A DNA stretch of 64,000 nucleotides from Klebsormidium nitens (lineage: Eukaryota > Plantae > Klebsormidiophyceae): assembly GCA_000708835.1 (NCBI GenBank), contig DF237172.1, positions 1-64,000 on the forward strand, given 5' to 3'. Below are positions 1,671 to 50,727 of the stretch, in pieces. Every line of letters starts with the position of its first letter. Position 1 is the first letter of the stretch. The translations under genes and the position numbers were made by a program. The notes beneath the pieces were generated by a model. It did no database searches and was not told the DNA's origin. It saw only the letters and a program-made list of their open reading frames with translations.

Positions 1671-1721
1671 GTTCCCTGCGCCCAGCTGCTGGACACGTTC
1701 CGTGACGTCAGCTCTTTGCAG

Positions 1722-20400: not shown

Positions 20401-22623
20401 ACAGGCTGCGATTCGACTACCTGTACGATTGTTCGTGTTAAACTTGTTAAGAGTCTGCACGCGACTGTGTTACGTGGACGAAGCAATATTTCTAGTTCTC
20501 GGTTCCTCCTGGAATAGCTGAATCGGAAAAGCTTTCAAGGCAGCCGGAGAGATTTCTTACCTCGTCCTCGAAAAAGTTTTTTTCACCCCCAGCCTAAGCC
20601 CCCTGCTTCGCTTACAGACCCTGCCGCCAGCGCGGAGTGGCAGCACGATTGGCACCTGTTGCGGATGGTGAACAAAGAGGACCTCGGCACCGTGCGGAGA
20701 TTTCTGCTAAACGAGGTTCTTCGCGACGACACAGAGACGGTGAGGTTCGACAAGCTAACTTCGTTCGGCCGGTGGATGAATCTTGCGGTTACCTGCCACG
20801 GAAAGGAGCACGAGGAGCGTACCCTTTTTATGATACTTGGCTGCTCGGTTCGAAGCAGGGCTTGAAACTTGCCTAAGGGCGCTGACCACTTATGCTTTTA
20901 GAATTGGTCGATGTTTCTAAATGCGAAGACGGGACGAATAGTGCCGGCCAGGCTCCGAGTTGCTGGTCGGATTAGAAAAATTTCACCCCCTTCTGGAGGC
21001 CACTCAGAAGCCAAGGCCTTCGCCATTTGCGCTGCAGATGATCAGCGGTCTTTTCAGCTCTTCTTCCTTGAATGAAGTCTTCTGGACGATACGGTTCTGA
21101 TGTATACTTCTTTCGAGGTTGTTCTACGTTTGATGGATGCCTGCCGTCAGATTTCGACCATCACAGTCGAGGGAGCCCTTAAGCGGTGCGCATATCGAAG
21201 TGGCTGCTCTCGCAACGGTTCGGTCGTTTTCAAATCCCTAAGCTATCGGGCTGTGCTGTCTTCATTCTAAGTTAGCTCTCAACATGTGTGCAGACAGAAG
21301 ACGGAGGCGATCCGAAGAGCACCAACCACTCTAGCAAGCCGGCGAGTGTCGAAGTTCCAAATCCGCTTACAGCGGCACCGGCAGGCGAGCCTTCAGCGAG
21401 GGGCGCGGTGGGAGAGTGAAGACCGCCCGCTTTGGAAGCCGTGTCGGAGGGACAAGGGGGGATTAGCGGGAGCGAGGCAAAGGCCTTGAACTACCTGATG
21501 CACGCGGACGGGTCCGCGGGAAGCGTCGGGATCGACGCGCTCCGGCAGCGGAACTTCGTGAAGGAAGCGGTGGACGACGTGACGAGCTGCATCCTGCCTT
21601 TTGGGGGGAAGGATGCGATTCAGCGCGCGCTCGGGGAAAAAGGTACGGAGCTGGTGAAGCACTTGCTCGGGTACGCGTCGGGGACCGGGGAAGCGGCTCT
21701 GCGCGGGTGTCCGGTCCACTTCCGGCGAATGAGCTTACAACAGGCGGGCGAGATCCTCAACGCATTCTGCAGCGAGCGCCTTCGGTGGCTGTTCACGTGG
21801 GACCTGCTCCGGAGCCCGCCGGTGCACTTTGCGGTTATGCAGACGTGGCTCGAGCGGCCGGAGAACGAGGGGCTTGGGGAGACGGTCCGGAGCATGGCAC
21901 TGGCGGCGCTACGGGTGCGCGCGTATGCGCTTGGGAAGCACTACCGGGCAGCCAAGGCGCGCTTGTTGGACGGAAGGGAGGTGGAAGCTGGGCGGGAAAT
22001 GGCGCATTTGGCACTGGCCGCTGCGGTTGCAACTGACGAGTTTGCGAACTGCATCTACCGAGAGACGACCGAGTTCTGCGGGCGGAAGTACGCGGACGCG
22101 CTGCTCAGCGCACGGGCCACCTTCACGGACGAGCCGGCGCCGGACACGGTCCCGGTTGATGCCATCTGGATTGAGAAAATCTTGACGGAGGCGGAGGCGC
22201 GTTTCGCCGAGGTTCCGGAGGGGCATCGGGGGTGGATTCAGACGAACTACGACATTTTGAATGGACTGAAGCCTGAGCTCCAAGCAGCCATTGAGGAGCT
22301 GAATTTTGCCAATCTCGTGAAGAAAATCGACGAGGGGGCGGTGAAGTATGGCACAGAAAGACGCTCCGAGGGCTGTGAGAGTGACCCAAGATGGGTCGTC
22401 AAGTCGTGCTTGAATGTGGCCGTCATCATGAAATGGGTGAGGCGGAAGCTGAGCGAGACCGGGGGCCGCTTTTTCTACGGCGAGGAGTACCTTGAGCGTG
22501 TTCTCCTAGGGACGGTAAGCCACCGTTTGCGGCTTGAGAAGCGCCACGTGGCGAGATTCCGAAGCCGACTGTTGGAGTACCTGATCGAGTTCTAACCGAT
22601 CAAGATCAACGTTCGATCGCAAA

Positions 22624-22696
22624 GGTTAAGGTTAAGGTCAGGGTTAAGGCTAAGGTTAAGGCTAAGGTTTGGTTCGGTCAAGGCCAAGGTTTGGTC
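22624..22696 (+). repeat. degenerate telomere-like hexamer array (GGTTAA)n
   Basis: ggttaa ggttaa ggtcag ggttaa ggctaa ggttaa ggctaa ggtttg... in an intron. Confidence 0.8.
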
Positions 22697-23151
22697 GCAG
22701 AGTTTTTGTTAAACTGCCGCTCAGTGGCCCACGAACAGACGTTGAGGGAGGAAAGGCTCACGATTGCATGCTTTCGTCCATATCTAAAGGTGCATGCATA
22801 CTGGCAAAAAGAAGTCCCGTACTCTGGGTTCATTTGTACACACGCGCATCGTTTACGCTGTACGAACGCGGTCGACCAGTTTGGCCTGGTACGACCCCCT
22901 TCGTGTCCCTATTTCTCTCTTTTCTGGTTGTCAACCACAAACAATTGATTCTCAGAATCCGCAACGGTCGGAAAGGCTTGCAGCACTTCGAGTACTCCTC
23001 CAAACACGGCGACCAACTTCAGTACACGTTCTGAATCTGTGACTCGCCGTCGGAAGTGATTAGAAAGAGCAGCAGATCAAGAGCTGCTTGACGGTTGGTG
23101 ACCAGGTTCGGATGCACGGGCATGCCAGCAGGATGTCTAGCTCTTATCAGC

Positions 23152-23265
23152 TTCCTAAAATCCAATTCCTGAAGCCCGATCCCTAAAGCCCGATCCTTCA
23201 AACCCAAATCACAAAACCGATCCCCAAAACCGATTCTCAAAATCCGGCTCCTAAAACCCGATTCT
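23152..23265 (+). repeat. degenerate 13-14-bp minisatellite, about 8 units
   Basis: Units resemble tccctaaa(a/g)cccga and lie directly upstream of the 23283 acceptor. Confidence 0.75.
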
Positions 23266-26200
23266 CTCTCCGGATCTTGCAGGAGAATTTCGACGCCCAA
23301 ACCATATTCTTGCAGCTGCGGGTGGCTTTCGGGGACAGACGGGCCGCGGTCACCAGTGAGCTGTGCGAACTGCTCGCGAGCGCACTGGAGGCCGCCGACG
23401 GCATCCCGTGCCAACTCACGGAAGCAGCGGAACAGGCGGCAGCGGAACTGGTGAGTGTGGCTGCCTCATCGCACCGTTTGGGTGGAGCTTCTCTAGGATC
23501 CTGAGGCAATTTGTCGGTTCAGCCGTTGGCCTGTTCCGTTCTATTTGGACCTGGCTTTGTTCCGAAGCGGAACCACTCTACCGTTTGGAGTCTAGGTAGT
23601 TTTGGAGCTGTCTGGGATTCAGATTGAACGTGCTCTATGTCCGCACCAGTCAGAAGATGCATACACCGGACACTTGCACCGTCAAGCGAACGTGGTACCG
23701 TGAACTTTGATGTTTTCTTGTACCAAGGTTTCTATAAAGAGCCACCAGATTGAGTCGCCATGTACCATGACTTATCGACTCGTCCGAAACCCAGCCATCA
23801 AATTTGGGCCGCAGAGACAGGCGAGACGCACCGATGATCGAGTTCTATGCTCGAATCGGGTCAGATTATGTCGTTTAGCCATGTGGATTTCTCTGTCTTG
23901 AATTGCAGTTAAGCGCCGAGTCGGAGCTAAGTTCCGAATTGGCGCCAGACGCGAAGGCCACGAAGAAAGGGAAAAAGAAAAAGAAAAAGGGTCATTCGAC
24001 GCACACACCGGGGCGTTTACCCGCCGCGGCTGGGGGAGTATTAGCCGGGAAGGTCGACTTGAGCGGAGATGACGTCAGCTCGCCCCGTCAGCTTGCCCCA
24101 GGGCCGTCACTGGCTCCCCCCGCCGACGGTGCCGACTCATCAAGAGACACCAGTGACGGCAAACCCCGTAATAAGCCCAGTTATAAACCCGTTGATGACC
24201 CGGGTGATGAATCGGGCGTCCGAATGGCCGGGGAATCAGAACCGTCCAGCCGCTCGGGAGGGGATGTCGAGATGGGCGGAGGAATCGACCAGGGGAGAGG
24301 AGAGCGGCGACAGGGAGATGCGGAGCAGGGGCCAGGAAGCGCCGGCAGTCGGACCCCGTCGGACCGTCCCAGCGTTGGCGCAAGAGGCAGAGGAGCAGTG
24401 GAGGCCGCTGACGTCATCAGCGGTCACCAGGAGGTGGGTTTGAAAAAGCTGTATAAGCGGACAACCCTCTCTCGTTCAAACCAGGCGCGATGGCGTCCTA
24501 GAGGTGCATTTGAATCTGCACCAACACGTGGCACCTTCCTGCGGTGAACTCGTCGGCCTGGGGCCGCGTGGAGCAGAGAACACTCCGCTCCTTAGAGTCG
24601 TCCAGAAAATTACTTCTCAGGAACGAATAGAAAAGCGTTCGATCAGAGTTGCGGACTAGAGCTCTTCAAACTGGCAGCGTCATTACCCATCAAATTGAAG
24701 AACGTCCAAGCAGAGTAGCTGATACAGACTCGACGGATCCAAGGATGCATTATTGACACCTTTCGCACAGGTTCGAGGGGACTCCTCTCCTGCCTCAACG
24801 GAGACGGGTCCGGGAGCCGCCTCGTCTTCCTCTCCGACCCACTCCGTTAGGCCCCTGATTACGAACCCGCCCAATGCGCCACCCGCGGCAGCGATCCCGG
24901 AGTCTCCGCTGGGCGAAACAAAGGCCCTACCGCCCGACTGCTGCAAGCCAAACGCCGGAGGCCGCTCCGACGTGGAAACGCTTTCGAAGAGCCACGTGGC
25001 AGCCGGTGAGAGGCCGCCGGGGCGCGGCAGGGGCGGAACTCTGGGCGGCCAGGATTCGAAGGCCGGGAGCTCTTCGGCACCTGCGACAGGTAAGGCCCAC
25101 TTTGTTACGACTCTGTGTTACTCACTCGTTTAGTTCGCAACACAACTGTTTTTGGGGCAAATCCATCTTGTGCGTGCTGCTGACCAAACAATTCCGATCA
25201 ATGGGCACTCCATCTTGTCACCTCGGTATTGAGGATCTGAGAAAGATGGGCCTTCGACAAAAGAAACTTCTCTGTTCAAAGACACCGAAGCTGTCCTTAG
25301 GTGTATGATGCAGCCTAGCTTGTGCGAGAAGATATACAGGGACTTTACCGTGGAAACGGCTGTCGGACACACGAGATTCCTGTTCTTAGTTTTCCTTGCC
25401 TAAATGAATGAAGTGAACTTACCAAACAGAGAAGATGCCACTGTCTTTGGTCGACAAGTTTTTCTTTGTGCATTTCCGTAGTTATTGCAAACCCGTCCTT
25501 GCAGAAGCTAAGTTTCCCTAGATCCGTTTCACCAACAAAGTGTTTCTCTAGTTATCATTCTCTGAGCCCTGGGTGTCACGTCCCAGACAGTATGAACATG
25601 TCCCTGGAAGCCGGGACTTGACACTGGCAGCTCCATGGTTCGCTTACTGCAGATTCACCGCCGAGACGGTTGGGCCGTTTCCGGCCACTCCGCTTTGTTC
25701 GGTCGGCTAGGTAGTCCGCGGATTTGTCGCTCCGCAGCTGCTGACGTTGCACCCGAACTTATCTGCGGAACTTCGAGGCTCTCCAAATTGATACTGCGGC
25801 CGGAACTCGAACTACTCGCTTCTGCCCTCTGCAGAATCTGTGACTGCGGCAATTGGGCGCCAGGATATCCAGCTAGGCCCCACCACAACCCTACTGGCCG
25901 TTTCTACCGGTTAGTGGGCTGTCACCTGCGTCCCAGGGAGCGCCGCCCGGTGTTGACGTCAGCCATGACGACTCTACTTCTCTACTCCCAGTCCCGGCCC
26001 TCACTCCCAAGGATCAGGCCGACCCTTCTGGCGAACCCCAATCTGCTGAAAGCGGACCGCGCGTAGTTCAGACGGTGCGGAATGTAATGGGCAAACGCAA
26101 AAGCAATCGCGAAGAAAAGCTGTCGGGGGCCCTTCCAGGGCAGACGAAGCCGGCGGTGATTCCTTCAGGCAACGGGGCCACTCTCATCTCCCGAGCAACA

Positions 26201-27142
26201 GCTGCGTCGCTGTCTCAGGGGTCTGGAGACCTGCAAGCAAATCCTTATCCTTACCCAAACACGAACCCTAACCTCAACCCTATCACTAACCCTCAGCATT
26301 CCCCGCTTACCAGTGAAGCCTCCCGTAAGCCCCGGGCGCCGTACAACCCCCTCGCCCGAGCGAGGCCCCTTACCCCGGCGGTTCCCACCGGGCACTCTTT
26401 GTTTCCCGAGGCAAGCGCCGTCCCGGCCACCCCGCCAAGAGGCAGAACTTCGTCGGTGGATCAACCGACTGCCAAAAACCCTGAGCCCTCGACAAGTGGA
26501 ATGGACGTGACATCAGTGGAAGCGTCCGCAGACGTCACCCATGACGTGCCCCGCCTAATGACAGGTGTTCATTCGGAGGCTGCCGGCCCAGGCGCACAGC
26601 GGTCGCCGGAGCCTGAGTCGTTCTCCCCTGAGCTGCCTTCGATACTGGCGATGCTCCTACCGGTAGAAGGTGCTAGTCAAAACGTACCCCCTCCGAATTC
26701 AATTGCGTTCTCCAATGTGTATAAATTTGAGGGCCACCGACCAAACCCCGGATCAGACTCGACCGGATCAAGCCACTCGGCTCATGCTGATTGGGTTGAA
26801 ACCCTCGAGAGTGGGCCCGATACCTGGGGCGAGTCGGCGTCGGTTCAAACAAAGAGTTACATTGCATCAGATAGGGCAGTAGGACGGAAGAAGACGAAAA
26901 ATCATAGCGGCCCGGATAAGCAGAACGGACAGGGGAGCGACGTTTGTTGCATCTGCTTTGACAGCCCAAAGAACGGGGCAATCGTGCCGTGCGGCCATTG
27001 CTTGTGCTACGAGTGTGGCACTTTGATCAAGGAAAAGAGAGCGGAGTGTCCGTTCTGCAACACCAAGATCGAGAGCATCTTTAGATTATTCCTCTGAGCT
27101 TGAGGATGAGATTGAGCAACCTTAAGCCGTAGTTTTAGGACT

Positions 27143-34253: not shown

Positions 34254-34466
34254 TTATTGGCCCTCCGCTCTTCCGCAGGATTCCGGTCCGTTTTTCGCTC
34301 TTCCGCCGGAAGCTGATCCGTTCTCCTGGCGATCTGCTGGCGGGTCTTGGTCCGCCTCCTCATCGTTCGCCTCTTGGCGGCTGGAAACGTCCGTGTTCGT
34401 TTTCGGATCGCTTTCTGCTTTTCCGCTGTCGGAGTCATCTGACGGAACTACGGACGTGCGAACCTC
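34254..34466 (-). other. possible terminal coding exon of an unresolved gene (70 aa, acidic/low complexity)
   Basis: taacag|EVRTSVVPSDDSDSGKAESDPK...GRAEGQ*. A further coding-looking segment lies at about 35660-35757 (IVRTLFINAANDPNAWQ). No homology recognised. Confidence 0.3.
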
Positions 34467-35997: not shown

Positions 35998-38900
35998 TCA
36001 GAAGAACAATCTAAAGACACTTTCGATCTTAGTGTTGCAGAACGGACATTCCCCTCTCTTTTCCTTGATCAAGGTGCCACAATCGTAGCACAAGCAGTGA
36101 CCGCACGGTATGATCGCCCCGCTCTTGGGGTTGTCGAAGCAGATACAACAACTGTCGCTCTCTTGACCGTCCTGCTTATCGGCTCCGCTACGAGCTTTCG
36201 TTTTCCTCCGTCCTACTGTTTTACCGGATGCGATCGGACTCTCTGTCCGAATCGCCGCCGAGTTGCTCCAAGAATCGGGCCCACTCTCGGTGGTTCCAGA
36301 CCAATCAGAGTTTGCCACGTGGCTTGATCCGGTAGAGTCTGGTGCAGGGGTCGGGCGGTCCCTCTCTGGTTTATATACATTGGAGGCCGCAGCGAATCCC
36401 GGAGGAGCTGCGGTTTTACTAGCACTTTCTACCGGTAGAAGCATCGCCAGTATCGACGGAAGCTCAGGGGAGAGCAAACCGGGCTCAGGCGACCGCTGTG
36501 CGCCTGAACCGATGACGTCCCACAAGCCCCCAGTCATTAGGCGGAGCATGTCTCCATTTACATCAGCGGACACCTCCGCTGACGTCGTAGCCTTCACTCT
36601 GACTGTTGCCGGCTCAGAGCTTTTGGCAGCCGGCTGACCGACTGAAGGAGTCCTGCGTTTTGAGGGGGTGATTGGAACGCCGGTCGGCTTGGGAGAGGCA
36701 GACTGCCCGGTAGGAATCGCAGACTGACCGGTAGGAACGGCAGACTGCCCGGTAGGAGCACCAAACTGCCCAGGAAGAACGGCAGACTGCCCGGTAGGAG
36801 CGGCCGGGGCAAGGGACCTCCCTTGAGCCAGGGGATTGTACGCCAGGGGCTTGCGGGGCGGTTCACTGGTAGCCAGAGGACCCCGAGGGTTACTGTCAGA
36901 TATCGGGTTAGGATTAGGGTTAGGGTTCGCTTGCAGTCGCCCAGACCCCTGGGACAGCGGGTTAGCTGTTGCTCGGGGGCTGGGAAGGATTCCGTCGCCC
37001 GAAGCATTCAAACCCGGAGTATTCACACCCGGCAGCATCACCACAGGAGGAGCAACCGACGGCTTTCCCTCTCGGTTGCTTTTCCTCTTGGCCGTTTCGC
37101 TGCGCGTCTTCTGAGTCTTGGGCGATCCAGCTTTCGCGCGTTGGGACCCGCGGGAGGGGGGGGTGAGGGGCGGAGTTGGAAGCAGGGGCCCAAAGTCGTC
37201 ATGGGTGACGTCAGCACCGGCCGTCGCTCCCCGGGACGCCGCCGGGGGCCCTACGACCGGTAGAATCGGCCGGTAGGGTTTTGGCGCAGCCTGCTGGGTG
37301 TGTTGGCGCCCACTTGCCGCGTTCGGAGACTCTGCAGAAAAGCAAGAGCGGGTGGACGGTTTGAGTTCAATCATGTTTCGCCAGAGAGAACATTTGGTCC
37401 TTACAACCGGTCCTCAAAGTTGCACTCTGACAAACATTCCAAGTGCAACGTTCGCAGTAGAGTAGTTTGAGGACGATTGGCAGATTACCTGATCTATTGT
37501 TTACGTAGTATAGGGGCCGGTAATGGCCCAGCCCTTTTAACATGCGGCTCGGTTTTCTCTTGCACAACACTCTTTGAATGCGAGTCAACTGTAGTAAGCA
37601 CACCACCGAACTGCCGCTCTTCATTCCGCCCTTCATTCTACCTGCTCCACAAACTTCTCACTCAGCGCACGGAACAAGCTAAGACAATCGCTGTTCCGTC
37701 ACCTGATTGTGAAACCGGGTACGGGGAAGAAAGGTAAATAACCGAGACCCAAGACCACAATCCTGATATGATAACGCCGTTCGCCCAAGCTCGGCTGCTT
37801 CAAATACTTCCTGGAAGGTGGTAGAGCTGCAAGTGTCCGCCAAAGAGATCTCGGGCTGCGTGACAACAACATCAGAAATCTGAAAGAACTTCCCAACGGT
37901 CTCAAGGATAAGACCGCCCCATCCTGTCGAACACGACCTGCATTCAGATCTTCGGCACAAAGTTGGCGAATCGGAACGCAGGGTCGACCGAGAAGATCTG
38001 GTTGTTGGGCTTTCCCAATTTGGCTTTGCAAAAACAAGTAACCTTGAGGTGAAAGCCAAAATGAAAAACACAAGAACCGAATCAAAGATGGGATTACCTA
38101 TCGCAGGCACTGAAGCAGCCGTCCGGCTCCGCGACGCCTGTCCGCCAAGCGTTCCGCCTCCGCTACTGGCCGTCGGCCTCTCACCGGCTGCCACATGGCT
38201 CTCCGGACCCGTCCGGACGTCCGACCGGCCTCCGGCGTCCGGCTGGCGGCAGCCGGGCGTTAGGGTTTTGGGCTCGCCCGGCGCAATTGCCGCGAACGCT
38301 CCGGTAGTTGGAGAACGAGGCGAGGTCGAGCCGGGGACATTGACGGAATTCGAAGAGAGTGTGGAGACGACACCCGAAGCGACATCCATCGAAGCAGGAG
38401 CAGCGTCCCCTCGAACCTGCAGAAGGTGCATTGGTTGAACTTTCGAGCTTCGCTTAGCCGGGTTAGCTGATCTGCTTGGACGGCTACGGGCTCTTGTATG
38501 GTGACCTGTCGCTTTGGAGAGCTCTCGACTCTGAGTTTTACAAAGTCGGAGTATTCCAATGTGTCTCCGAACGGCAAAACTTTCAATTCAAACACCGTCG
38601 AGTGGTGAGTAGGGCCCCCAAACTCATCTTTCATCTGTAAAGGAAAGCCACGCTTATCGCCATCCAGCGGGTAAGGTCAAGAAGGAGACCCAGAACTAGT
38701 TTCCGTTTAGTTCTCTAAGGAGGTGAGGCGCAGGTTGTTCTCCGCACCGAGTCGTCCCAATCCAACGTATTCCTTGCGGGAACAAGTGCCACGTGTCGTG
38801 TCCCTAAACCCATTACCATACCAGCGTTTGAGTCGTCAAATAATTATTATTTTTATGGCCTGACGAATTCGCTGGAATACTTCTGGGCGTAACGCTAGGG

Positions 38901-41900
38901 CTGCCGAAACCCGTGAACGTATTATAGTCAATTATCTGGCGTCGAACCTGACGAAATCAAACGCTGGTACGGTATGAAGCCCACCGCAAAAGCTTCACAA
39001 GAAGGAAAATACATATCCAGCTCTCAATTCGACCCACCTCATGCTGACCGCTGATGACGTCAACGGCCTCCGCTGCTCCTCCGCCGACGCTGATGCGCTC
39101 CGGTGGGGCCCGACTGCTGGCGCTTTCTGCGCCCGGCCCAAAGAGTCCCTTCCACCTCCGTCCATTCCGTTGGACCACTCCCCCTCCGGACTTGTCGACT
39201 CCCCCTCCGGATCGGCTGGACGATTCTGACTTCCAGTCAGTCATCTGGTCGCCCGAGTTAACACCCGGTTCATCACCGGGTTGACTACCGGGTTTATCAC
39301 CAGGTTCGGCATAACCGGCTTCTCTTGTTGGAGTTGAACCGGCGCCGTTGTCGGGGGAGGTTGACGTCTCCGGGATAAGCTGATGAGGCGAGCCGACGTC
39401 ATCTCCGCTCGCGTCGACTTTCCCAGCTGCTCCGCTGCTGGCCGGGGCAGGGAGCCCTTCCGCGTTGTCCGTAGACTGACCCTTCTTTTTCTTCTTCTTC
39501 CCTTTCTTGGTGCCCTTTGCGTCAGGTGCAGACTCGGCACTCAACTGCGAATTGAAACAGAAAGGTTTCGAACCGGTGGAAGAAAGAGTCGGAACAGGGT
39601 ATAAGCACGGGAATCGATGCTCAGTAACCTTCCGTGCACGAGAGGCACCCTGCGTTTGTGAAAGACTAGTCCAATTGCAACACAATACTTTTACATTGAT
39701 CTTACTCCACAAGCATTCGCGACTGCGTCCAACAAGTGCCTGATGCTGCAGGTTCTGAAGAAGCTGGACAAAGGGAGTACATCGCACTTTGGTCAAGCAG
39801 CGCTTGTTTGGAACCAAACAAAGGGGAAAAGGAGCGGGAAAAGGAGTGCAAAAGGATCAGAGGACAAAAGGATCACGCAATACTAGGGCACTCGGATAGC
39901 GTTTGTAAACATACCAGTTCTTTCACCCGCAGCATCGAACAAGGTTGTCGAAAGAGTACTCTGTTCCTCATTTCAAAGCCCCTTGTCTCTGCGGCTTGTC
40001 ACTCCTCGACGACCAGTATCAAAAGCAGTCTGCCCCGAGGACTTCTAGCAGAACTCCTTCCGGTGACGTCCCTGGTTGCCCGTGCTTACCAGTTCCGCTG
40101 CCGCTGCTTCCGCTGCCTCCTTGATCTGCCGCGGTATTCCGTCCGGCTCGTCCCGTGCGCCGTGAAGCATGATCCAAAGGTCTTTGGCCAGAGCAATCGC
40201 GGTCTCCTTATCCCCCAAGGCGGATCTCAGAGCCAGATGCAGCTCGGTAGGCCCCCAGTCCCTCTGCAAAATAGAGATATGAAAGTGGGCGTCGGAAACA
40301 TCAAGCACACTTGTGAGACTGAGTCCTGAGGGACGCTAGAGGGAGGCTCGGACAGGCCAACTCTGAGCCGTCCGGTAAATCAACTCGGTGGTAAAAGCAC
40401 CGTTCGATGTCCAGGTGCACTCGCAAGCGCAGACGCCCACTTCGAAGATTGGCTTGGGAGTGCCCAAAGATTACAGGGCTGCATACTACATATTCAACTT
40501 GTAGTATATTGAACTTCGCTGCTATCTAATCACAAAGCGTCCTGCTATAATATGCGGCTCCTAGGGCAAGTCTTGCAAGAGACCCGATGGATTTGACATG
40601 GCTAAGGCTGAAGTTACTGGTGTTGCGTTTCCCATGGTCGGCAGAGAATCCTGTTGATACTGATTGCTTCAAAGAGATCGACCGGTGGTACAAGTGAGGC
40701 CCCCGCGTTTTCCCTTCGGATTTCGGATGACCTTAGCAGGAGTGCATGGCACAAGTATGCGGATGACGCAGGCAGCAAATAGGAAGCTAGGCATAACGGA
40801 CGAAGCGTCCTGAGACCAACAGAGAATGAAACTCAAGAAAAATAATAGTAAGCCCATATAATAGTAAGGTAACCGCACTGTGACGGGTAGGGTTAGTATG
40901 GTGGTTAGGGTGGGTACGGGTGCGGAGCGGGTGTTTCTTTTAAGGTTAGGGTTTTAAGTGTTAGTCGGAGCTTACTATTATCTTGGCTTACTGTTATCTT
41001 TCTTGAGAGTTATCAACAGAGAGAAGCGCAGGCACGATATCAACCACGAGACCACTATGAAACACGTCACCAGGCATTAAAAAAGTGGACACTCGACACA
41101 AGCGATTCATCAAAACCGTGCAAGCAGGGCACTTGGATAACTGCATGTCAGCACCCGAAGCGAACCATGCCCGTTCCAAACCCAATCGAAGCTCCGACCA
41201 GCTTGTCGCCAAAAACCTCATCTTATCAGGCTTGCTCTTCCAAAATAGCAGGTCATGGGCTCACCACGTCTAATGGTTAAGTCAGCGCTGGTGTTCAGGT
41301 TGGTTCTAATTTTGTTCAAACGATATCTCTTTATTTATCACTTTATGTTCAATCTTGCTATATTTCGGGTTAGAGGTTATAACCCAGAAACTGGGCTTGG
41401 TTTCCCGTGCGGCAAAGCAATCGCTCACCTCATCCCAGAGAATCGCCTCAACGCGCCTGACGGCGCCGCTGCTGAGCCCGGCCTCGGGGAACCTCCTCCT
41501 CACCCAAGTCATGATGACGGGGACGTTCACGGATGACGTCAGCTGCCCCCACTTAGGCCCCACGAACGACGCTGCGACTTCGGGGTCTACCCCAGCAAGG
41601 ATGTCTTTTCCGAGCGCGCACGAGACCTGATCCACCACGTTCCCCACAAACTGTTTCACAAAGTCCCGCTGCTGCAGCGCGGCTACTGAGTCGGCCGGCT
41701 TGCTTTCCGCTCGGTCATCCGAGCTCGTCGTTCCGTCGTTCTGTCGTTCCGTCCCGTCGTTCTGAGCCGCCCGTTGCGCACCCTTGTCAGCGAGCAGAGT
41801 CCCCGCGTCCGCTGACGTCACTGGGGTGTGCGGGGCGCTTTTCACCCGGGCACCCGAGTCCTTTGCGCGACTCCCGACGGTCTGAGCTGGCCCTCGCGCA

Positions 41901-44900
41901 ACCTCTGCAGCAGCTGGCGTCTCCGCGTCCGCTGCTGCCGCTGCCTCCTTGATCAGCAGCGGAATTCCGTCCGGCTCGCCCCGTGCGCTGTCTACGACGA
42001 CCAAGAGGTCGGTGGCCAAGCCAGCCCCCTTCGCCCCAAAGGCGGATCGCAGGGCCAGATGTAGCTCGTCAGGCTCCCACTCTCTCTGCGAAGCGAAAGA
42101 ATATTCTTTGTGGATCGACGTGGTTTGACAATCAGTCGCTGCTCGGGCACCGTAACCTCGCACCCGAGAGGTTGCACGGCCAGTCTGCATTTCTTTAGGT
42201 GCGAGCTCTGCGAATTTCGACAATTCACTGTCATCCTCGCTATTGTTGCAACTATCAAACACAACATACTGGGTGCGACTTTGAGGGGCCTGAGCTGAAC
42301 CTAGGAATCCCCTGGTTGGCAAAAGCTTATGAGATCACTCATTGAGGATCAGTATCTAAAAAGCCAAAGACCACGGTTTGCAGTGATGCAGGTAGCAGGC
42401 GAGGAGCTAGGCATCACGCATGCAAATGCATCCAGGGCAGGCAGAAAGCTTAGTCACCGGATAGGGAAAGCCCACAGCATTCGAATCTCCAGAATCTCAT
42501 CACGAGTCAGTTCAATCTCGCAAGCAGCGCCACTCGTTCTTGCGAGCAGGACACTTGCATGCCACAGAGTTAAAGTAAGACCTCAACGTGGCCATTTCTG
42601 ACCAGTATACGAAGCTGCCCACGTTGGTACTCGTAACATAAATTTCAACCCATTGCCACGTGGCAGGCTCACCAGGTCCAAAAGGATCGCCTCCACACGC
42701 TTCGCAGAGCGGCTGCTGAGCCCGGCCTCGGCGACCTTCCGCTTCACCCACGTCATCACTACGGGGACGTTCAGGGATGACGTCAGCGAGCCCCAGGACT
42801 TAGCCCCGGGCTCATCTTGCAATCTCCCCGCAGCTTTCCGAGCGTTTACTTCCCCCAGCGACGCTTCGAGCGCGAGTTTTTGCTCCTCAAGAAGGTCAAA
42901 GATTTCCCCGACCCACGCGTGGTGCTCCTCCGGCGCAGCCGCCTCTGTTCGTCCCCTCTGCGCCAGAGCCATCTCTACGCACGTCGCCGCACTTTTGATC
43001 GCCGCCAAGCTGTCACGCAGGGACTTGCTCTCGGGCGGTTCCGCGAAGCAGCGATAGACCCGGTGCAGAACGTGGGGGAACTTTCGGCCCGAAAAGAAGA
43101 GCGCCTCGCAGTAGAGGCACTTCGCGAACTCCGCTTGCGTCAGCGTGACGGAAATCGCCAGGCGCTCCAGCGCGCTCCGCAGCTCTTCCGGCGAAGCATC
43201 GCGGCCGTCGATCGATCCCATCGCACGGTCTAGCCGCTCCTCCACCGCCCGGTACTGCAGCCGAAGCGCGTGCTCGCGCATTTTGAGCGCCGCCACAGCC
43301 ATGCACCGGATCGTCTCTCCCACGCCGTCGTTCTTGCGCTTTGCAAGCCATTGCCACAGGTCTTTCTGGAAGAAATGCTCGGACGGGCTCCGGAGAAGGT
43401 CAAGCGTGAACTCCCACCACGCCTGTTCGCTACACGCGGCGAGAAGGTACTCGTGCAAGTCCCACGCCCGGCTTACCCTCCGGAAGATCCCGGCCGGACA
43501 CCCGGGCAGGTCCGCAACCCCCGAGCCGGACAGATACTCCAGGTAACGGCTGGTTAACTCGGCCCCGCAGTCCGTCGTGTCTACAACGCAGGCGATGCGA
43601 CCCTCCACGTCATCCACCGTTTCTCTTACGAAGTTACGCCGCCGCAGCGCTTCTACCCTGTCGACTGCCCCGCTTTCCGCTGGGACTTCCGAGCTCGCCG
43701 TTCCGTTGTTCCGTCGTTCCGTTCCGTCGTTCTCGGCTGACTCGTGCACACCCTCGTCAGCGGGCAGCGTCTCCGCATCCGCTGCTTCCGTTGCTGACGT
43801 CACTGGAGTGTGCGGGGCGCTTTCCACCGGGGCAGCCGAGTCCATTGCCTTTCCCCCGTCGTTCTGAGCTGGCCCTTGCGCACCCTCGGCAGCGGGCAGC
43901 GTCTCCAGTTTCGCTGCATCCGTCGCTGACGTCACTGGGGTGTGTGGAGCGCTTTCTGCTGTTCCAGGGGGGGACTCTGCTAAGTCAAGAGCGCCCCCCG
44001 AGCTCCCCTTGACAGGGCCGCTTGCGGCGCCCCTCTCTGCTGCGCAAAGAGCGGCTTTTGCGGAGCCGGATGCGGCCGTTCCAGCTGCGTCGCTAGGCCC
44101 CGTCAATCCACCTCTTCTTCCTTGCTCGGCACCTCCAGCCTCAGACTGGGCCTCGACCTTCCCCCTGCAAACGGAGCAACGGTCGGATAAGAAGTTTCGC
44201 GGTCTTCATTAAAATTGTATGAAGCGGGCCGCCAGCTTAATCTCCCGGCGATGCGCTGGTTTTGCAAGCACCGCAGGCACCGACGAGCCGCCTGCATACA
44301 AATTCCTCGGAGGGCAGAGCTCAAAGGCTCACACACAAAGAGTCGTCTCATAGACTAGCAACAAGGACATCATCATTGGCCTGCCTGAGAGATAGCCCAA
44401 AAATGCCAAACATAGACAGACCAGCCAAGGGCAGAGCCTCGCCAAGCGTTCTCACCTGAGTAGGTCCACTGGAAGTGGATCCGTCCTCGCTTCTTGCGCC
44501 TCCGCTACCACGGCTACCGTCCCTTCTAAGCTAGCAGTGCCTACCGCCTTCCCCCCCCCCTTTGGCTCGCCGCACACTATCCCGTCCTTTGCATCTGCGG
44601 TCGGAAGACCCTTTTCGGAAGGCCGAAGCGCAGGACTTGCCCCCCGATCGTCCCCTTTAAGCCGGGCGTTCCCTTGCGAGATCGCCTCTTGCTCTGGATC
44701 GGACTCGCCAGTGGCCCCCGCACTCCGCTTGACCTCTTCGGAGGACAGACTTGCAGCAAGAAGTCTCGCTGATTTGTCCTTCGGCACGCCCTTCTTCTTC
44801 TTCCGCTTTTTGATGGTCTTCTCGGTTGGCTCCGACTCTGCTCGCAGCTGCAAATCAGAAGGAAAAGCCTTGTTTGGCGGTGTAAACACTGTTGCAGTGC

Positions 44901-47900
44901 CTGACACAATTTTTGTAGCTGGAAATCAACCTGACACAAGAATAACGTCAGCGACCAGATTGTGCGGGGTGGGGGGCGCAAGCCTGCAAGCGTCTGTATG
45001 GAAGAAAAAGACTTCAAAGATGACGGCTTCGACGCATCATGGACAAGTCGGTCTGTGTAGGCAAATGTAAGCTGCCTTCCAAGGTTACAAAATAAGGTAC
45101 ACGATGACTAGGTAAGGTAGCCTTTGACATAATCTGAATGCGACAAGGACAGAGTTGCTGATCCGAGAAGTTATTTCGGTCCCAACCCCAAGAGAACCCC
45201 ACCCAAACAAGGCGACATAGGATATTCTGGCTGCTAACCAGGCTGATTGCCAGAGTGAAGACTCAAAGTATTGGATAAGTGAACGGTACTTAATCTTGCT
45301 ACAAGGCTGGTTACTGCCAAATCTGGCCAGACAACATTTTAAGTTCGTTTTAACCAGCCCATGACCATCAATCGTTAACGGCCAACAATCCCTCCGCGAA
45401 AAGAAGTCAACGCTCACCAGTTCTGCTGCCGCCTGGTCTGCCGCTTCCTTGAGTTGGCGCGGGATACCATCGGCGCTCAGCAGCGCGCTTGCGAGCAGCG
45501 ACCCCAGTTCGTCGGCGACCGCCGCCCGTCTCTCCCCGAGAGCCACCTTCACTTGCAACTCCAGAAGTCGGGGGTCCACCCCCGTCACCTGCGGAAGTAC
45601 AGAGATTGGGCGTGAGTTTTTCCAAAACCCAGCAACAGAAAAGGATTTGAGAATGCACAGAACCTTGTGTGTAAACAATCGGATCCAGCTCTGGAGAACG
45701 GACTCCAAGGGCAGGGACAAGTGAGCTGTTACGGTGGAGGGAACAACCACCGCGTCGAATCAACGCTTTACATTGCAGCGTCTCCAACCCAGCTCTGCTC
45801 TGAAGTCGGCTGGGTGTTCACGTTTGCCTGACGAGGAGGGCTTATCTGCTTTGGAAGTGGCCCTGGTCCGCCAAAGCTTTGCGACTGAAAGAAGCGGCAA
45901 TGTCGAGTTGCTGAAAGCAGGCTCATGACAGAAGGTAGAGCTTCACGCGGTGTACTCGAAAAGTATGAGGAGAGATCGACGTCACATCACGAGCAACCTC
46001 GCTAATAAAGCCGACAGTCTGCACGCAACACCGCTTGAAAGCATGGTGGGGTTTGACACATCACTCGCCCAGTCTGCCGCAACTGTTCTCGAATGCCACC
46101 AAAAACAAATGCCACCAAATGTGCAGAACGACCCGTCGAAGCTTCTTCCAGAAGAGATCTTTGGATTCAGCGACGCACCTGGTCATTAGGACACTCCTTG
46201 CTTGTATGCACGCACCTTCGCTTGTGGTTGAGAGCATGCATTGTAAGCCTTTTCGCTCCAAGATTATCTTGTTCGTCTCTTGATAGGTGGATAAGGAGCT
46301 CCGTGAATCATATACAGAGACTCCAACTCATCGCAGTTGCCACGTGGCGATCCTCAAGCGCTGCCACGTGGCAACCGGCCGCTTACCGCTTTCAAGAGAG
46401 CGCGCTCGAGATACTTCTCCGAGTAATAGTTGTTGCCTCCAGTCTCGCCCAGCTTCCGCCTCGCCCACGTCATGATGACGGGAGCGTTGAAATAGTTGCC
46501 GACGGCCCATCTTGCCTCCCCTTCGGCTTCCCACCCCTTCAACCGTCTCTCCGTGCGGGAATCCAACCCGCTCTCGTCCTTCTCGTTCACAACGTTGGCA
46601 AATTTAAGCTCCTCGATCGCCGTTTGAAGCCCGGACTTCAGGCCTCCCAGAATGTTGTAGTGCGTTTGCAGCCACTCCCGATGCCCCGCCGACACCTTGG
46701 CCAAACGCGCCTCCTTCCCCGGCAAAACGTCGTCCAACCAATACGCGTTCATCACAACCATCTTCATCGTCGGCTCGTCCGTGAACTTGCCGTACACGAA
46801 GCGCAGGACGTCCGCATACTTCCGCCCGCAAAACTCGGTCGTCTCGCAGTAGATGCAGCTCGCAAACTCCTGGGTTGCAGTCGCAGCGGCCAGGGCCAGA
46901 CGCGCAAGCTCTTGCCGTTCTTCCCGCGTAGCCGACGCCCCCGCTCCCGCTAACAAACGCGCCTTTGCCGCCCCGTACTCCGTTGCAAGCGCGTGGGCTC
47001 TCACTCTCAGCGCCGCCAGCGCCATGCCCCGGATCGTCTCCCCGATGACGTCATTCTCCGGTTTCTCGAGCCACGCGCGCATGACCGCAAAGTGCTCCGG
47101 CGGGCTCCGGAGCAGGTCCCACGTGAACAGCCACCAGGCGCGCTCGCTGCAAAACGTGTCCAGGACCTCGCCGACCTGTTGTGACGTCATCCGCCGGAAC
47201 CGGACCGGACACCCGCGCAAATCCGCGACCCCCGTCCCTGTCCTATATTCCACCAGCAAGTTTTTCACCAGCTCCGTACCCTTTCCCCGGGAGATGCGCT
47301 GGATCATCTCTTTTCCCCCAAACGGCAGGATCCAGCTCGTCACATCCTCCAACATCTCCTTCACAAAATTCCGCTGCCGGAGCGACTCGATTCCCACGGT
47401 TCCGTCTGACCCGTCTGCAAGCGTGAGGTACTTCAGACCCAGTGTTTCGCCGTTGCTTCTGCTCCTCACAACCTCGGAAACGACCGCAACAGGAAGCGAT
47501 GGTGAATCTCCCTCCGCGCCGCTCCCTCCAGGCTCCCCTGCCGGCGCCGCCGTAGGTGGATCCGGAGATTCGGAACTTGCCGGCTCCCCCGGGGTGTTGG
47601 TCCTCTCCGTTTCCCCTTCGTCTTTTGTCTGCAGCAAATCGTTAGAGCTCACTTTATATAGAGGAAGTTTGGAAAATAGTCTAGCTGATTGGATGGATGA
47701 AATCGGACGCTGGCCGCCCGCGAAAGCAAGCGTTTTCTTTGTGTACTCGGGTCAACATATCCCTGAACTGTGATCGCAAAAGTCTGAAAATTGACATCGG
47801 TCAGAAGTCAAAAATCCTCGGATCCTCGGAATGAGTAGAGATGGACCCGGCGGCAAAGAGCCATTACTTTCGGAAAGAGGGACGTTCAGGGAACGAGCTC

Positions 47901-49983
47901 AAAAGAGCGCTGATCATCTGCTGTGCAAATGACAGGCCTTGGCTTCTAAGTGTACCCCTGAACTACGTTATGACGAGTCGTCCTTTGCTTAAAGCACACC
48001 TTATCAAGCCCACCCGAATCCAGCCGGTACTTTCACCCCCATTTTCTTTTCGAGTGGCACAAAATCAATCCGTGGAAAAAGTGAATCAGCGCCCGGCAAG
48101 GGCAGTACCTTGATGATGGATATAAAGCAGCCCCACGCATCAGAGACCGGGTAAGCTCCTCACGCCTCTTCTCAAAGCAAGTAGGCGCACGGTTCGGTCA
48201 CTAACTCACGATGTTGGTTGGGAAAGACTCACCGTCTCCCTGTCCTCATGTTGAACCTCGTCTTCCAGGAAACTCCACACCGTGGCTAGATCCTCCCTGC
48301 CCACCATCCGCAGCAGTTGCCAATCGTGCCTGGAGAATTGTACGACATAGCTGAAGCCTAATCCGAGAACTGAGAGCTTCGACCCCCCGAGAATGTTGTG
48401 ATAGGGGTCAGAAACCGGGCCTAAAAGAGTGTCCATTTAAGTACAGCTTACAGTCACAGGTGAGGCCATCATACAATTGGCATAACTGGAAAAGACTGAG
48501 GATATTGAAAAGATTATCAATAACTCCAGCGTCCAATGGATTCCCAGTATAAATCTGAACAAATCATCTTTCGGAACCTGTGTGCACCCGGAACTTCTGC
48601 ATCAACCTCTAGATCAGCCGCAGTTGACAGTTGAGACATATTCCAAGCTCTGTCAGCGTTTGCAAACTTCATATGAACAAGACCGCCAGAGTTTGAACCC
48701 ATTGGATGCAAGAAACAGTGGTTTGTTGAGTTTCTGCGGAAAGCTCGGATTCAAGCACACGCCACACTGCTTCCCAAACCACGCCATAAAGTGCCCCATG
48801 CTGTGAGCGCCTTCTGCTCATCGTACAACATGGCTCCCATCCTCCCAAGGCTCTACCCAAGCTCGGAATACAAAATGCAAAAGAATGGTAAAACTCAGTA
48901 AGACGAGAAATCTGGACTTCGGCATTCTCACTTCCGCAACTTGTTCGTGGGCAACAGTCATTGATGTGTGGCACAAACTCACTGCTTGCGCTTGATGAAG
49001 CGCTCCTCCTCAACCTCCTCACAAGACTCCACAACCCCCTCCTGCGTGCTGTCCAAGTCAGCATTCTCCCCGGGTGTGACCGGCTCGGCTGACTCGCTGC
49101 TTGGGGTCTGGCCCAGCTCCTCCCCCTCTTCCGCACCGGCACTATCCCCCCCAGACTCAACTTCGCTCAGCGTCTCCTCATTATTTTCACTTGCGCCTTT
49201 CTCATCCCCATCCGTCTCGCCCACATCGCCAGCCCGCTGCTCTTCCCGCCCCTCGTCTTCCACTTCTGTTTGCGGCCTCTGCTCTACTTCCGCCTTCGAC
49301 GTCTTCCTCGAGCCTTTCGCATACCACATCTTTGGATTCAACGGCGCCGAGGGCAGTTCGGTTCGCGCATTTGCAACCAGCGGCACGAACTTCCCGTCCG
49401 CGTCCACGCTCACGTGCTTGAACACGTGCTGAAGGCCCGCGAGCTTCATCTGGTGAGACAGCTGGCGCAGCTGATATTTATAGTGGCTGGCCCGCGACTT
49501 CGCCGTACTCAAATCGTCCGGCAGCTCTCCTAGCATGTCGTCTGCGGGATCTGTCGGTTCAACAATTCCCAGCGCGCGCTCACACTCTGCAATGGCCTCC
49601 TCGTTACTCTCCCTGCCTTCCAGAGGTATATACTCCTGGAGCAGCAGTGCGTAGAAGTATCCATGCTCCACCGAATTGGGGTTCAGAACTGTCGCTTGCT
49701 TCGCAGCTTCCAGCGCGACAGCCACGTGCCGCTTCTTCAGCGCGCTCGCATCGTGCTGCTGCTCTGCCAGCCGCTTCTCCACATATGCATGGTACCTGAA
49801 CCCCAGGGAGACATTGGGGTACTTCTGGCAGGTCTCCTTGATCGACTTCTGGGCCCGCGGCGGGTTGTTCTTCAGCGACTTGACTGCCTTTTCGCATTCG
49901 GCGCGCACAATGTCGTAGTCGCTGAGCCCAGACGTGGCTGCTTTTGCAGGCCCAACGGCGCTGCTCTTATTCTTCTTCCCCAT
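35998..49983 (-). CDS. large DUF627-(unknown domain)x3-RING protein, 11 exons, about 2461 aa
   Basis: Exons 49983-48983, 48329-48233, 47628-46387, 45588-45418, 44847-44456, 44164-42673, 42085-41429, 40263-40090, 39544-39038, 38416-38098, 37331-35998. All GT-AG, in phase and stop-free (7386 nt). The N-terminus (IVRAECEKA...AKQATVLNPNSVEHGYFYALLL...ECERALGIVEPTDPA) matches plant DUF627. The C-terminal CCICFDNPKSGAIIPCGHCLCYDCG...CPFCNTKIESVFRLF is a RING-HC. Confidence 0.82.
36691..36800 (-). repeat. coding 21-bp tandem repeat (PTGQSA[V/I/S]-like x5)
   Basis: gcagactg(c/a)ccggtagga units in the last exon of the RING gene. The paralogue has a single unit. Confidence 0.85.
40832..41007 (+). mobile_element. 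G-run-core fold-back element, arm type c
   Basis: Ends ctcaagaaaaataatagtaagcccatataatagtaag / cttactattatcttggcttactgttatctttcttgag. Core 40882-40960 has six GGG runs. Confidence 0.85.
45228..45378 (+). repeat. 'GCTAACCAG' repeat family, copy 4
   Basis: gctgctaaccagg...gttcgttttaaccagcccatgacc matches both ends of copy 1. Confidence 0.5.
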
Positions 49984-50727
49984 AGCTAACAAAGGAGGAG
50001 GCTGCCTTAAGCACAAGCTCGGGCGATCACATTCAAGAATGTAAGGCCATAGACCACCACGGGGCCAGCGGATTGGTCAAATCAAAGGGCGCGGCGGAGC
50101 AAACAGACGGTTCAGCATGTTGCAACCGTTGGTTTCCATTTTCGCAACCATTGTTTTCAATCTCCTGAGGCCCTATTGGGGCCGCTTATTGCACCGGTGA
50201 ACCCACAATGATCTTTGGAGCACGTCAAAACTTGGAGGAGCTGAACAAGCAAGTGCTGAACAAGTACAACATACGGTAGGTACACTGTCACAAGCACAGC
50301 TAGCTAGCTCCCGGCCCACGAGCAAGGTACAAACTAGACTGAGACCAAAGACAAAAAGGCGGTGGTAATGGCCGAAACACGACCACAGTATCTACTTTGC
50401 CACGTGGCGAGAAGGCCGAGCCCCCAAGCGCGTGCCCAAACTGGCCGAGAAAGGACGTGGCAGCCTGAGAAAGCTCTGCAGCCGGGCACTACTCCTCAGA
50501 CTCAGAGTGACACTGAAGGGCAGCAAGACGCAAGAGAAGAAGAGAAGACGCAAGCCAGCATCGCAGCCTGCAGACCATGACACCATGAACCTTCCTCAGG
50601 AGGGCGAAGTTGTCAGTTTCAACTGATGATCTTGGAACTTGAAGCACTCTGGACGCTGCTGCAAGCCCAACATATCAGAGTTTTCCACGCTCAATTCAAG
50701 AACTATTGCTTATGGTGGGCATGCAAG
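49984..50727. promoter_or_regulatory. divergent intergenic/promoter region between the RING gene and the AFG1-like gene
   Basis: Head-to-head starts about 745 bp apart. Contains a GCCACGTGGC G-box near 50399 and a GGCCCA site-II-like motif. No TSS evidence. Confidence 0.4.

Follow-up and report, generated by a model that had tools for sequence, protein, structure and literature searches.

The locus on the minus strand of contig DF237172.1 of Klebsormidium nitens raises the question of how a head typical of a deubiquitinase family came to share a reading frame with a C-terminal RING finger, and whether the two belong to one expressed gene. The window analyzed here covers 64,000 nucleotides (positions 1 to 64,000 of the contig). 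DUF627, an uncharacterized head, occurs on UBP-type deubiquitinase genes of a group that is specific to plants. The in-phase minus-strand model of 11 exons proposed in the earlier note proved essentially right, as an independently built model also runs from an ATG at 49983 to a stop at 35998 in 11 exons, with GT..AG borders at every intron and a joined coding sequence of 7386 nt (2461 aa) that has no internal stops. We consider it fairly probable that the locus is a genuine, expressed gene and that its product, about 2,461 residues long, is a modular RING-type ubiquitin ligase, with a DUF627-family head and a body made of a helical domain (X) and PWI domains. The features of the gene, its RNA-supported introns and its paralogue are listed below.

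Exon 1, 48983..49983 (-), aa 1-333: ATG at 49983; TPR-like head of the DUF627 family around 49558-49872, then a long helix; the tail is acidic and of low complexity; RNA contig 48982-49816 is spliced to exon 2.
Exon 2, 48233..48329 (-), 97 nt, aa 334-366: last remnant of the DUF629-side exons; joints 48328/48982 and 47628/48233 found in 4 of 4 RNA runs.
Exon 3, 46387..47628 (-), aa 367-780: low-complexity linker, domain X copy 1 and N-terminal half of PWI-1; covered by RNA contigs 46385-47628 and by the X alignment.
Exon 4, 45418..45588 (-), aa 781-837: C-terminal half of PWI-1, with the motif GIPRQLKEAA; joints at both ends in RNA.
Exon 5, 44456..44847 (-), aa 838-968: disordered, with a poly-Lys NLS-like run KKRKKKKG; joints in RNA.
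Exon 6, 42673..44164 (-), aa 969-1465: domain X copy 2 and N-terminal half of PWI-2; acceptor in RNA, donor at 42673 (CTG/GTGAGC, phase 0) predicted.
Exon 7, 41429..42085 (-), aa 1466-1684: C-terminal half of PWI-2, a degenerate X remnant without core, and N-terminal half of PWI-3; predicted splice sites, self-similarity, and 46% identity to L006 324-1001 of a related alga.
Exon 8, 40090..40263 (-), aa 1685-1742: C-terminal half of PWI-3; predicted sites; homologue of exon b in the annotated model of paralogue A (P0002).
Exon 9, 39038..39544 (-), aa 1743-1911: disordered, with a poly-Lys NLS-like run KKGKKKKKKG; predicted sites equal to annotated junctions of paralogue A; conserved in L006.
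Exon 10, 38098..38416 (-), aa 1912-2017: low-complexity linker; predicted sites matching those of paralogue A.
Exon 11, 35998..37331 (-), aa 2018-2461 and stop: Pro/Gln-rich repeats, conserved pre-RING region, C3HC4 RING at about 36016-36159, and the tail ESVFRLFF.
Introns 1-5, supported by RNA (-): 48982-48330, 48232-47629, 46386-45589, 45417-44848 and 44455-44165.
Paralogue A, 18043..27097 (+), tail-to-tail with the gene: DUF627 head, C2H2/DUF629 remnant, in-frame premature TGA at 21417-21419 between head and repeat, one X-PWI unit, and RING.

For the 5' half of the model, RNA contigs of four runs from four studies were placed on 44000-49999, and the spliced contigs contain five introns (CT..AC ends on the plus strand) that connect the N-terminal exon with the first repeat and with the exons beyond it. 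In each of the four runs, a spliced contig of 1454 nt leads in frame from exon 1 through exon 2 into 523 nt of exon 3, and overlaps the next contig by 21-30 nt within a single uninterrupted ORF, while contigs of 5.3-6.0 kb join exons 3, 4, 5 and 6 and then extend for 4539-4569 nt more. The earlier note had named the read-through stops at 46354 and 42583 as places where transcripts might end; the stop at 46354 is intronic because the RNA contigs splice out 46386-45589, and transcripts do not end at 42583 because contigs continue 2984-4569 nt beyond position 44000. The end of a 3713-nt contig lies 2984 nt past 44000, where the predicted exons sum to 2985 nt at the end of exon 10. The RNA-like runs contain 0.52-0.57 of the words of 40001-50000, and the predicted exons make up 0.524, plus one retained-intron contig. 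For the 3' part, we infer introns 6-10 and the presence of the RING in the mRNA, the predicted junctions of exons 6-11 being based on splice-site homology with the annotated model of paralogue A, length bookkeeping and conservation.

For the head of the gene, its homology to the DUF627-DUF629 (plant UBP-type) family held, but a Pfam DUF627 match of its own did not, as the N-terminal 217 aa did not match PF04781 even at E<=10, and the whole exon-1 ORF gave no match either. Scores above the gathering cut-off of 27.6 bits were obtained for paralogue A (30.6 bits), the orthologue P0015 (32.5), P0016 (28.3) and P0019 (34.8), to the last three of which the head is 73%, 71% and 60% identical, respectively, over about 215 aa. 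It is also 60-67% identical over about 200 aa to the canonical Klebsormidium-type first exons P0018 and P0019, which contain DUF627 and the start of DUF629. The putative DUF627 assignment rests on the scores of paralogue A and P0015 together with the 71-73% sequence identity to such copies. Exon 2 is homologous to residues 417-460 of P0016, to paralogue A and to positions 13352-13471 of the canonical gene L008; the DUF629 region with a C2H2-type finger after DUF627 is absent, the RNA contigs splicing exon 1 to the 97-nt exon and then to domain X. An AF2 model of the head (pLDDT 79) has helices at 22-36, 41-54, 59-74, 81-100, 105-118 and 125-138, and its best Foldseek matches are TPR domains of CHIP/STUB1 (E 4.6e-4, prob 1.0, TM by target 0.60-0.75), the matches to CHIP, HOP, Sgt2 and designed TPRs all having prob 1.0. 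A feature search of the ESM Atlas with the head returned TPR clusters as well (score 0.94-0.95), and the modeled head is a three-TPR domain, its helices forming three helix-turn-helix repeats and a capping helix as in the TPR fold.

For the body of the gene, the internal repeated domain that had been reported is real, with self-similarity and alignment giving two full X-PWI units and a third PWI. The repeat consists of a new all-helical domain X followed by an intron-split PWI domain, and in each PWI the interrupting intron is of phase 0 and has the same position. The second copy of X is 40% identical to the first, only 12 clusters match X among 1.84 billion (1.84e9) representatives, and searches of X returned no recognizable fold or function. 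The K. nitens PWI segments give no match to Pfam PWI (PF01480, cut-off 22 bits), and the homologous exons of relatives, L003 and L004 among them, align to its C-terminal half with 22.6, 23.2 and 28.8 bits. A profile of the C-terminal part of the repeat (A3) matches the PWI structures of SRm160/SRRM1 (1mp1, E 3.1e-5; 6ff4_Y, E 6.9e-4), and the same two structures rank first and second in VIA-wide against the AF2 PWI model (pLDDT 83), with Z 7.8 and rmsd 2.9 over 87 aa for 1mp1 and Z 7.2 over 86 of 95 aa for 6ff4_Y, both Z values being moderate for a helical model. The top row of an ESM Atlas fold search was a PWI cluster. A four-helix PWI fold, with profile similarity to solved PWI domains, is thus predicted. 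PWI domains are otherwise known from splicing and RNP proteins, and their presence in the repeat changes the likely biology of the gene. These domains were missed in the first reading of the locus.

For the C-terminus, the RING-HC assignment was confirmed by Pfam, residues 406-453 of the exon 11 ORF matching zf-C3HC4_3 (PF13920) with 46.5 bits (cut-off 27; E=3.1e-12). Among solved structures, the RING resembles MEX3C most closely in sequence (E 1.9e-8), ahead of CBL, cIAP and MDM2. In agreement with the reported lack of UCH in the modeled exons, no Pfam match to UCH (peptidase C19) was obtained for any exon ORF searched singly at E<=0.1, nor for P0002. The public model of the gene is 2387 aa long, ends at 34254 and has no RING match on record; it is reproduced exactly, in frame and with GT..AG introns, by exons 1-10 plus 37331-36433 and 34466-34254, a splicing pattern that apparently removes the RING. 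For paralogue A the annotation gives two genes, KFL_002230030 (500 aa) and KFL_002230035 (1069 aa), which are split at the TGA and lie only 79 nt apart. As both public models miss the architecture, searches of database architectures would not find it.

The public annotation itself suggests that the main product may lack the RING, with exon 11 spliced from 36433 to a terminal exon at 34466-34254, the protein comprising TPR-X-PWI only and the RING ORF being an unused relic or a minor isoform. The exact reproduction of the 2387 aa is in its favor, and the lengths of the RNA contigs are compatible with it as well, provided that the 3'UTR measures about 450 nt. However, the 142 codons that would be skipped, the last ones of the gene including the RING, have a dN/dS of 0.23 relative to the orthologue L006 and are therefore under purifying selection, and four gene copies agree in all eight zinc ligands and in the position of the stop. 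The alternative terminal exon has no homologue beside paralogue A, in L006 (where only 1.2 kb lies between the two RING exons of the tail-to-tail pair) or elsewhere, the donor ACCG/GTAGAA is weaker than all other donors of the gene, and the annotated model of paralogue A ends in the RING. A main product without the RING is thus distinctly unlikely. That the head and the RING body are separate genes or proteins, with transcript ends or starts in the interval that separates exon 2 from the first repeat, or at 46354/42583, is far less credible again, even though paralogue A is annotated as two genes and the contigs of the gene under study break inside exon 3 (47106-47135), as the 1454-nt contig and its overlap bridge precisely this region and the fate of both stops largely refutes the separation for the 5' half.

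It is also conceivable, if unlikely, that the gene is a young, decaying, lineage-specific chimera that is transcribed with little or no selected function, its head-RING combination being an accident of segmental duplication. The premature TGA in paralogue A, the degenerate third X copy and the lost zinc-finger exons in the gene under study, a dN/dS of about 0.5 in the linker parts, and the restriction of the family to a handful of clusters all agree with decay. On the other hand, comparison of the paralogues with their orthologues in a second alga gives 70-73% identity for the head, and the frames are open; the internal duplication, like the fusion, is older than the split from this alga; contig depth is similar across the four studies and splicing is clean; and the RING is strongly constrained. 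A transcribed gene for a RING-type ligase with a DUF627-family head thus remains the favored reading.

With respect to its origin, the architecture had been interpreted as an eraser-to-writer domain swap, which was upheld in part, the head being derived from the DUF627-DUF629 family and the tail being a genuine RING. X-PWI-RING occurs on one strand in the distant relative L004 and also in L006, a close relative whose gene pair is likewise arranged tail-to-tail. In the more distant relatives L003, L004, L005 and L007, the helical-PWI-RING body has no detectable DUF627 head within 10 kb upstream, and a replacement of UCH by RING inside one gene, in place, is therefore not supported. A better reading is a partial 5' duplication of the DUF627-DUF629 gene that became attached to an older RING gene. 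In this scheme, exons 1-4 of the canonical DUF627-DUF629 gene of the lineage would have been duplicated and placed ahead of an older X-PWI-RING gene, and the fused gene would then have been duplicated in inverted orientation. Subsequently, the zinc-finger exons may have disappeared from the gene under study and one more X-PWI unit arisen within it, while paralogue A may have kept the finger and acquired the premature TGA. After the head, paralogue A shares the next three small exons with the canonical DUF627-DUF629 gene, and its finger exon scores 17.8 bits for zf-C2H2 and 14.1 bits for DUF629, both below cut-off; this remnant does not occur in the gene under study. The paralogue had been described as having the same layout, which is correct as to collinearity but not as to an intact copy of that layout, given its TGA, its two annotated genes and its C2H2/DUF629 remnant.

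From N- to C-terminus, the predicted protein would start with a three-TPR DUF627 head and a 33-residue DUF629-side remnant, continue with two X-PWI units separated by a Lys-rich NLS-like segment, add a third PWI and another Lys-rich segment, and reach its IAP/MDM2/MEX3-like RING after a long Pro/Gln-rich linker that is disordered. The Lys-rich runs may bring it to the nucleus, the PWI domains may dock it on nucleic acid or on RNP/spliceosome-type complexes, and the RING would recruit E2~ubiquitin. The TPR head would bind a peptide ligand, probably one that the canonical DUF627-DUF629 protein also recognizes; the part of a DUB substrate-targeting module, which the earlier note gave to the head, is putative. 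Nuclear localization and the ligase, RNP-binding and ligand-binding functions are putative. It is a speculative and rather doubtful proposal that the ligase and the canonical protein, presumably a deubiquitinase, dock on one and the same ligand through their near-identical TPR heads (60-67% identity) and form a matched, exon-shuffled writer/eraser pair for nuclear RNP/spliceosome-associated targets reached via PWI.

Several known systems resemble parts of this architecture. Land-plant UBP/USP-type proteins with DUF627-DUF629-peptidase C19 form group G14 in rice (e.g. Os09g37580) and group G16 in poplar (PtrUBP30-32) (PMC6249995, PMC8281628). They share the homologous TPR-like DUF627 head, and paralogue A also keeps a C2H2 finger and a weak DUF629 match, whereas the gene under study lacks UCH, retains DUF629 only as the 33-residue remnant, and has an X-PWI body and a C-terminal RING, so that its predicted activity is the opposite one, ligase rather than deubiquitinase. 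CHIP/STUB1, with three TPRs and a C-terminal U-box E3 domain, follows the same logic of an N-terminal peptide-binding TPR and a C-terminal E2-recruiting RING-like domain; however, there is no sequence relationship, and the gene product, with a RING in place of the U-box, exceeds it in length by about 2,100 residues, with X, PWI and disordered segments lying between the two ends. MEX3C and other IAP/MDM2-type C-terminal RINGs are similar in that the RING, with its hydrophobic tail, ends the protein. The MEX3-type RNA-binding ligases share the concept of nucleic-acid-binding modules combined with a RING, but the modules in this gene would be PWI and not KH, with no homology beyond the RING. The likeness to SRRM1/SRm160 PWI (PF01480; 1mp1, 6ff4_Y), is seen by profile and, at 24-27% identity, in the structural match of the AF2 model; in contrast to these, the K. 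nitens copies are too diverged for the Pfam cut-off and occur three per protein, each preceded by X, in a RING protein.

The gene links PWI domains to a RING, a combination for which no published description of a ligase was found, and introduces a helical domain, X, that is new and has very few relatives. The presence of the same DUF627 head (60-67% identity) on a RING ligase and on a canonical presumed-deubiquitinase gene represents a natural experiment; as the head is shared, the bound ligand is likely common to the ubiquitin writer and the presumed eraser, and this pair provides a handle for finding the DUF627 ligand. The family is lineage-restricted. The premature stop in paralogue A and the degenerate third repeat in the gene under study suggest relaxed constraint in part of it.

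The window has the same coordinates as scaffold DF237172.1 of Klebsormidium nitens NIES-2285 (GCA_000708835.1). Gene B, the focal gene, modelled with 11 coding exons from a DUF627-type head to a RING finger, lies on the minus strand with its ATG at 49983 and its stop at 35998.

Coding exons of gene B, with the basis of their boundaries
Exon 1: 49983-48983, minus strand, joints from RNA contigs
Exon 2: 48329-48233, minus strand, joints from RNA contigs
Exon 3: 47628-46387, minus strand, joints from RNA contigs
Exon 4: 45588-45418, minus strand, joints from RNA contigs
Exon 5: 44847-44456, minus strand, joints from RNA contigs
Exon 6: 44164-42673, minus strand, start from RNA, end predicted
Exon 7: 42085-41429, minus strand, predicted sites
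Exon 8: 40263-40090, minus strand, predicted sites
Exon 9: 39544-39038, minus strand, predicted sites
Exon 10: 38416-38098, minus strand, predicted sites
Exon 11: 37331-35998, minus strand, predicted sites

Across 18 RNA-like runs from six studies, a fraction of 0.46-0.57 of the words sampled from 40001-50000 was present. RNA contigs from four runs of four studies were placed on 44000-49999, an interval that holds the least supported part of the model, the link between head and repeats, at which the public annotation divides the plus-strand copy, paralogue A, into two genes. These contigs contain five joints of gene B, reading CT..AC on the plus strand and thus GT..AG on the minus strand: a single 1454-nt contig per run unites exons 1, 2 and 3, and contigs of 5.3-6.0 kb unite exons 3, 4, 5 and 6 and extend 4539-4569 nt past 44000. 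The transcript end at the stop at 46354 contemplated in the earlier note is contradicted by the RNA contigs, in which this position falls inside the spliced-out intron 3. The junctions from exon 6 to exon 11 are predicted, at canonical in-phase sites in positions homologous to P0002, the annotated model of paralogue A; in a frame and length check the joined coding sequence comprises 7386 nt and 2461 codons with zero internal stops. Database searches took single exons or public proteins as queries. Three bookkeeping checks are consistent with the 11-exon model, while falling short of proof: the share of predicted exons in 40001-50000 is 0.524 versus 0.52-0.57 observed in RNA, the end of exon 10 is predicted 2985 nt past 44000 and one contig ends at 2984 nt, and the long contigs equal the predicted coding remainder of 4319 nt plus 220-250 nt. 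Poly-lysine runs in exons 5 and 9 resemble nuclear localisation signals. Within intron 3, low-depth RNA contigs cover 45560-46361 (depth 3-11 versus 40-127 in exons), pointing to pre-mRNA or to a degree of intron retention. At 46455, all four runs have a contig that agrees with the last part of exon 3 and then runs into 255 nt unlike the window; the first 30 letters after the break correspond to the segment FPEAGLSSGA in exon 7 (near 41480), and a cross-over between repeat copies during assembly is the most likely cause.

For the 3' end, the RING of gene B was recognized as zf-C3HC4_3 (46.5 bits), the sole Pfam match among the ten largest exon ORFs, and by sequence the solved RING nearest to it belongs to the RNA-binding ligase MEX3C, with CBL, IAPs and MDM2 next. 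The public annotation presents gene B as one gene of 2387 aa that ends at 34254, without a Pfam match on record. Its structure was rebuilt by length arithmetic alone: exons 1-10 together with 37331-36433 and 34466-34254 give exactly 2387 aa, in frame and with a GT..AG intron, and only this 1966-nt intron (36432-34467), by which the RING is lost and a terminal exon of 70 residues is gained, reproduces the public length. Very probably, then, the RING is spliced out in the public model. As the terminal exon (34466-34254) has no homologue in any place examined, this intron is probably an annotation error. Since, in addition, the 142 skipped codons are constrained (dN/dS 0.23 in comparison with a related alga's orthologue), all zinc ligands and the position of the stop are kept in four gene copies, and the two RING exons of that alga lie only 1.2 kb apart (contig L006, 5719-6956), we think that the RING-less model is wrong, or a minor isoform at most. 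In K. nitens the RING exons are 8.9 kb apart (27100-35990), with an annotated gene for a 351-aa C2H2 protein between them (29522-33218); given the 1.2-kb distance in the related alga, this spacer was inserted or expanded in K. nitens.

For paralogue A (18043-27097, plus strand), collinearity with gene B in a tail-to-tail arrangement was established by blastn and tblastx, in which the conserved blocks behave like exons; the extra internal material of gene B is a duplicate of its own repeat unit. The same layout had been claimed for both copies, and the claim stands as to collinearity, but paralogue A is interrupted by an in-frame TGA (21417-21419, plus strand), 42 codons into the exon of the helical domain X, where gene B reads GGA. 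Hence the public annotation cuts paralogue A into KFL_002230030 (500 aa) and KFL_002230035 (1069 aa). Its orthologue in the related alga (L009, 7347-7847) has an open frame at the TGA site. A 70-nt intronic element before the X exon (47885-47952, minus strand; 21001-21072, plus strand) is 83% identical between the paralogues, above the 72-77% of the neighbouring exons; the RNA contigs do not show it as an exon, and an Rfam search of the whole window, this element included, returned no match.

The head of gene B itself was not recognized as DUF627 by Pfam; the domain was detected in paralogue A (30.6 bits, cut-off 27.6), in the related alga's orthologue P0015 (32.5) and in P0019 (34.8). P0018 and P0019 represent the first exon of a separate canonical gene in Klebsormidium-type assemblies, which runs from DUF627 into DUF629 (37-43 bits) and whose contig L008 stops 3.3 kb after exon 1. 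The gene B head is 60-67% identical to both over about 200 residues. In P0016, the head protein of paralogue A, the head is followed by a C2H2 finger and two more small exons; together these are 42-57% identical to the three exons that come next in the canonical locus L008, and they match DUF629 weakly; gene B retains only exon 2, the last of these C2H2/DUF629-side exons. AF2 folds the head (pLDDT 79) into three TPR repeats closed by a capping helix, and this model best matches the TPR domain of CHIP/STUB1. A head HMM run against the contigs L001 and L003-L009, translated in six frames, found matches in L008 and L009 only, scanning metagenomes with the head alignment yielded no locus, and in the literature found DUF627 is mentioned only in two surveys of deubiquitinase families. 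We hypothesize that the head serves as a targeting module. From the DUF627-RING gene proposed in the earlier note, the multi-exon gene B, its RNA-joined exons 1-6 and the RING are retained; its head appears to be of DUF627 type, an indirect assignment through the sequences of relatives, and we infer the link of the RING to the rest of the gene.

The repeat unit of gene B spans about 390 residues, and a four-copy profile searched against 1.84 billion representatives recovered only 12 clusters, without any Pfam domain apart from the RING of paralogue A; the contigs of six of these 12 (L001, L003-L007) resemble eukaryotic genomic fragments. Word searches with domain X and P0002 gave one protein each, with a length window that conceals long relatives. 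Domain X, the first ~290 residues, is all-helical with the motif WW-x-FT-x-DLLRSP and was modelled with high confidence (pLDDT 83). Foldseek with the X-plus-PWI model gave no match in the PDB at E<=0.001, and an ESM Atlas feature search with domain X gave no usable match. VIA-wide paired the X core with helical bundles of a generic kind and with GPCRs (Z<=6.9), matches that were rejected as a fold assignment. The last ~100 residues, divided by a phase-0 intron, form a PWI domain, of nucleic-acid-binding type: the downstream short exons of relatives match Pfam PWI (22.6-28.8 bits), a profile of these segments matches the PWI structures of SRm160 (E 3.1e-5) and SRRM1 (E 6.9e-4), the same two are the best structural matches of the model (Z 7.8 and 7.2), and a PWI cluster stands in the top row of an ESM Atlas fold search. 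The order in gene B is X-PWI, X-PWI, an X remnant without its core, and a third PWI. In its working logic the protein is like CHIP, with a TPR and an E2-recruiting domain, and like MEX3, with a nucleic-acid binder and a C-terminal RING, but it belongs to neither family; a PWI-RING ligase is not described in any paper found.

Among distant relatives, L004 has X, PWI and RING together on a single strand and L007 is arranged TPR-PWI-X-PWI; a DUF627-type head was undetected within 10 kb upstream in these relatives. The most economical reading of the origin of gene B is that a partial 5' duplicate of the DUF627-DUF629 gene would have been fused onto an existing X-PWI-RING gene. The eraser-to-writer swap envisaged in the earlier note survives by half: the head is borrowed from a deubiquitinase-type family, but it would have been grafted onto a pre-existing ligase. 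In the closer alga (SRR23617307) both heads are present (P0015, P0017), as are the neighbouring anoctamin gene, the RING pair in tail-to-tail orientation and the extra repeat of gene B; its split from K. nitens is therefore younger than the fusion and than both duplications, the inverted and the internal one. In L007, an ENA metagenome contig, classical TPR repeats (TPR_7, 31.6 bits) lie upstream of PWI-X-PWI on the same strand (1401-3016 and 6552-9650); the X-PWI family may thus have had a TPR head, of another kind, from earlier on. The anoctamin/TMEM16 gene upstream of paralogue A (1-16927, minus strand) is syntenic in L009. At 59600-61100 (plus strand), a series of ORFs resembles a WD-repeat protein by eye.
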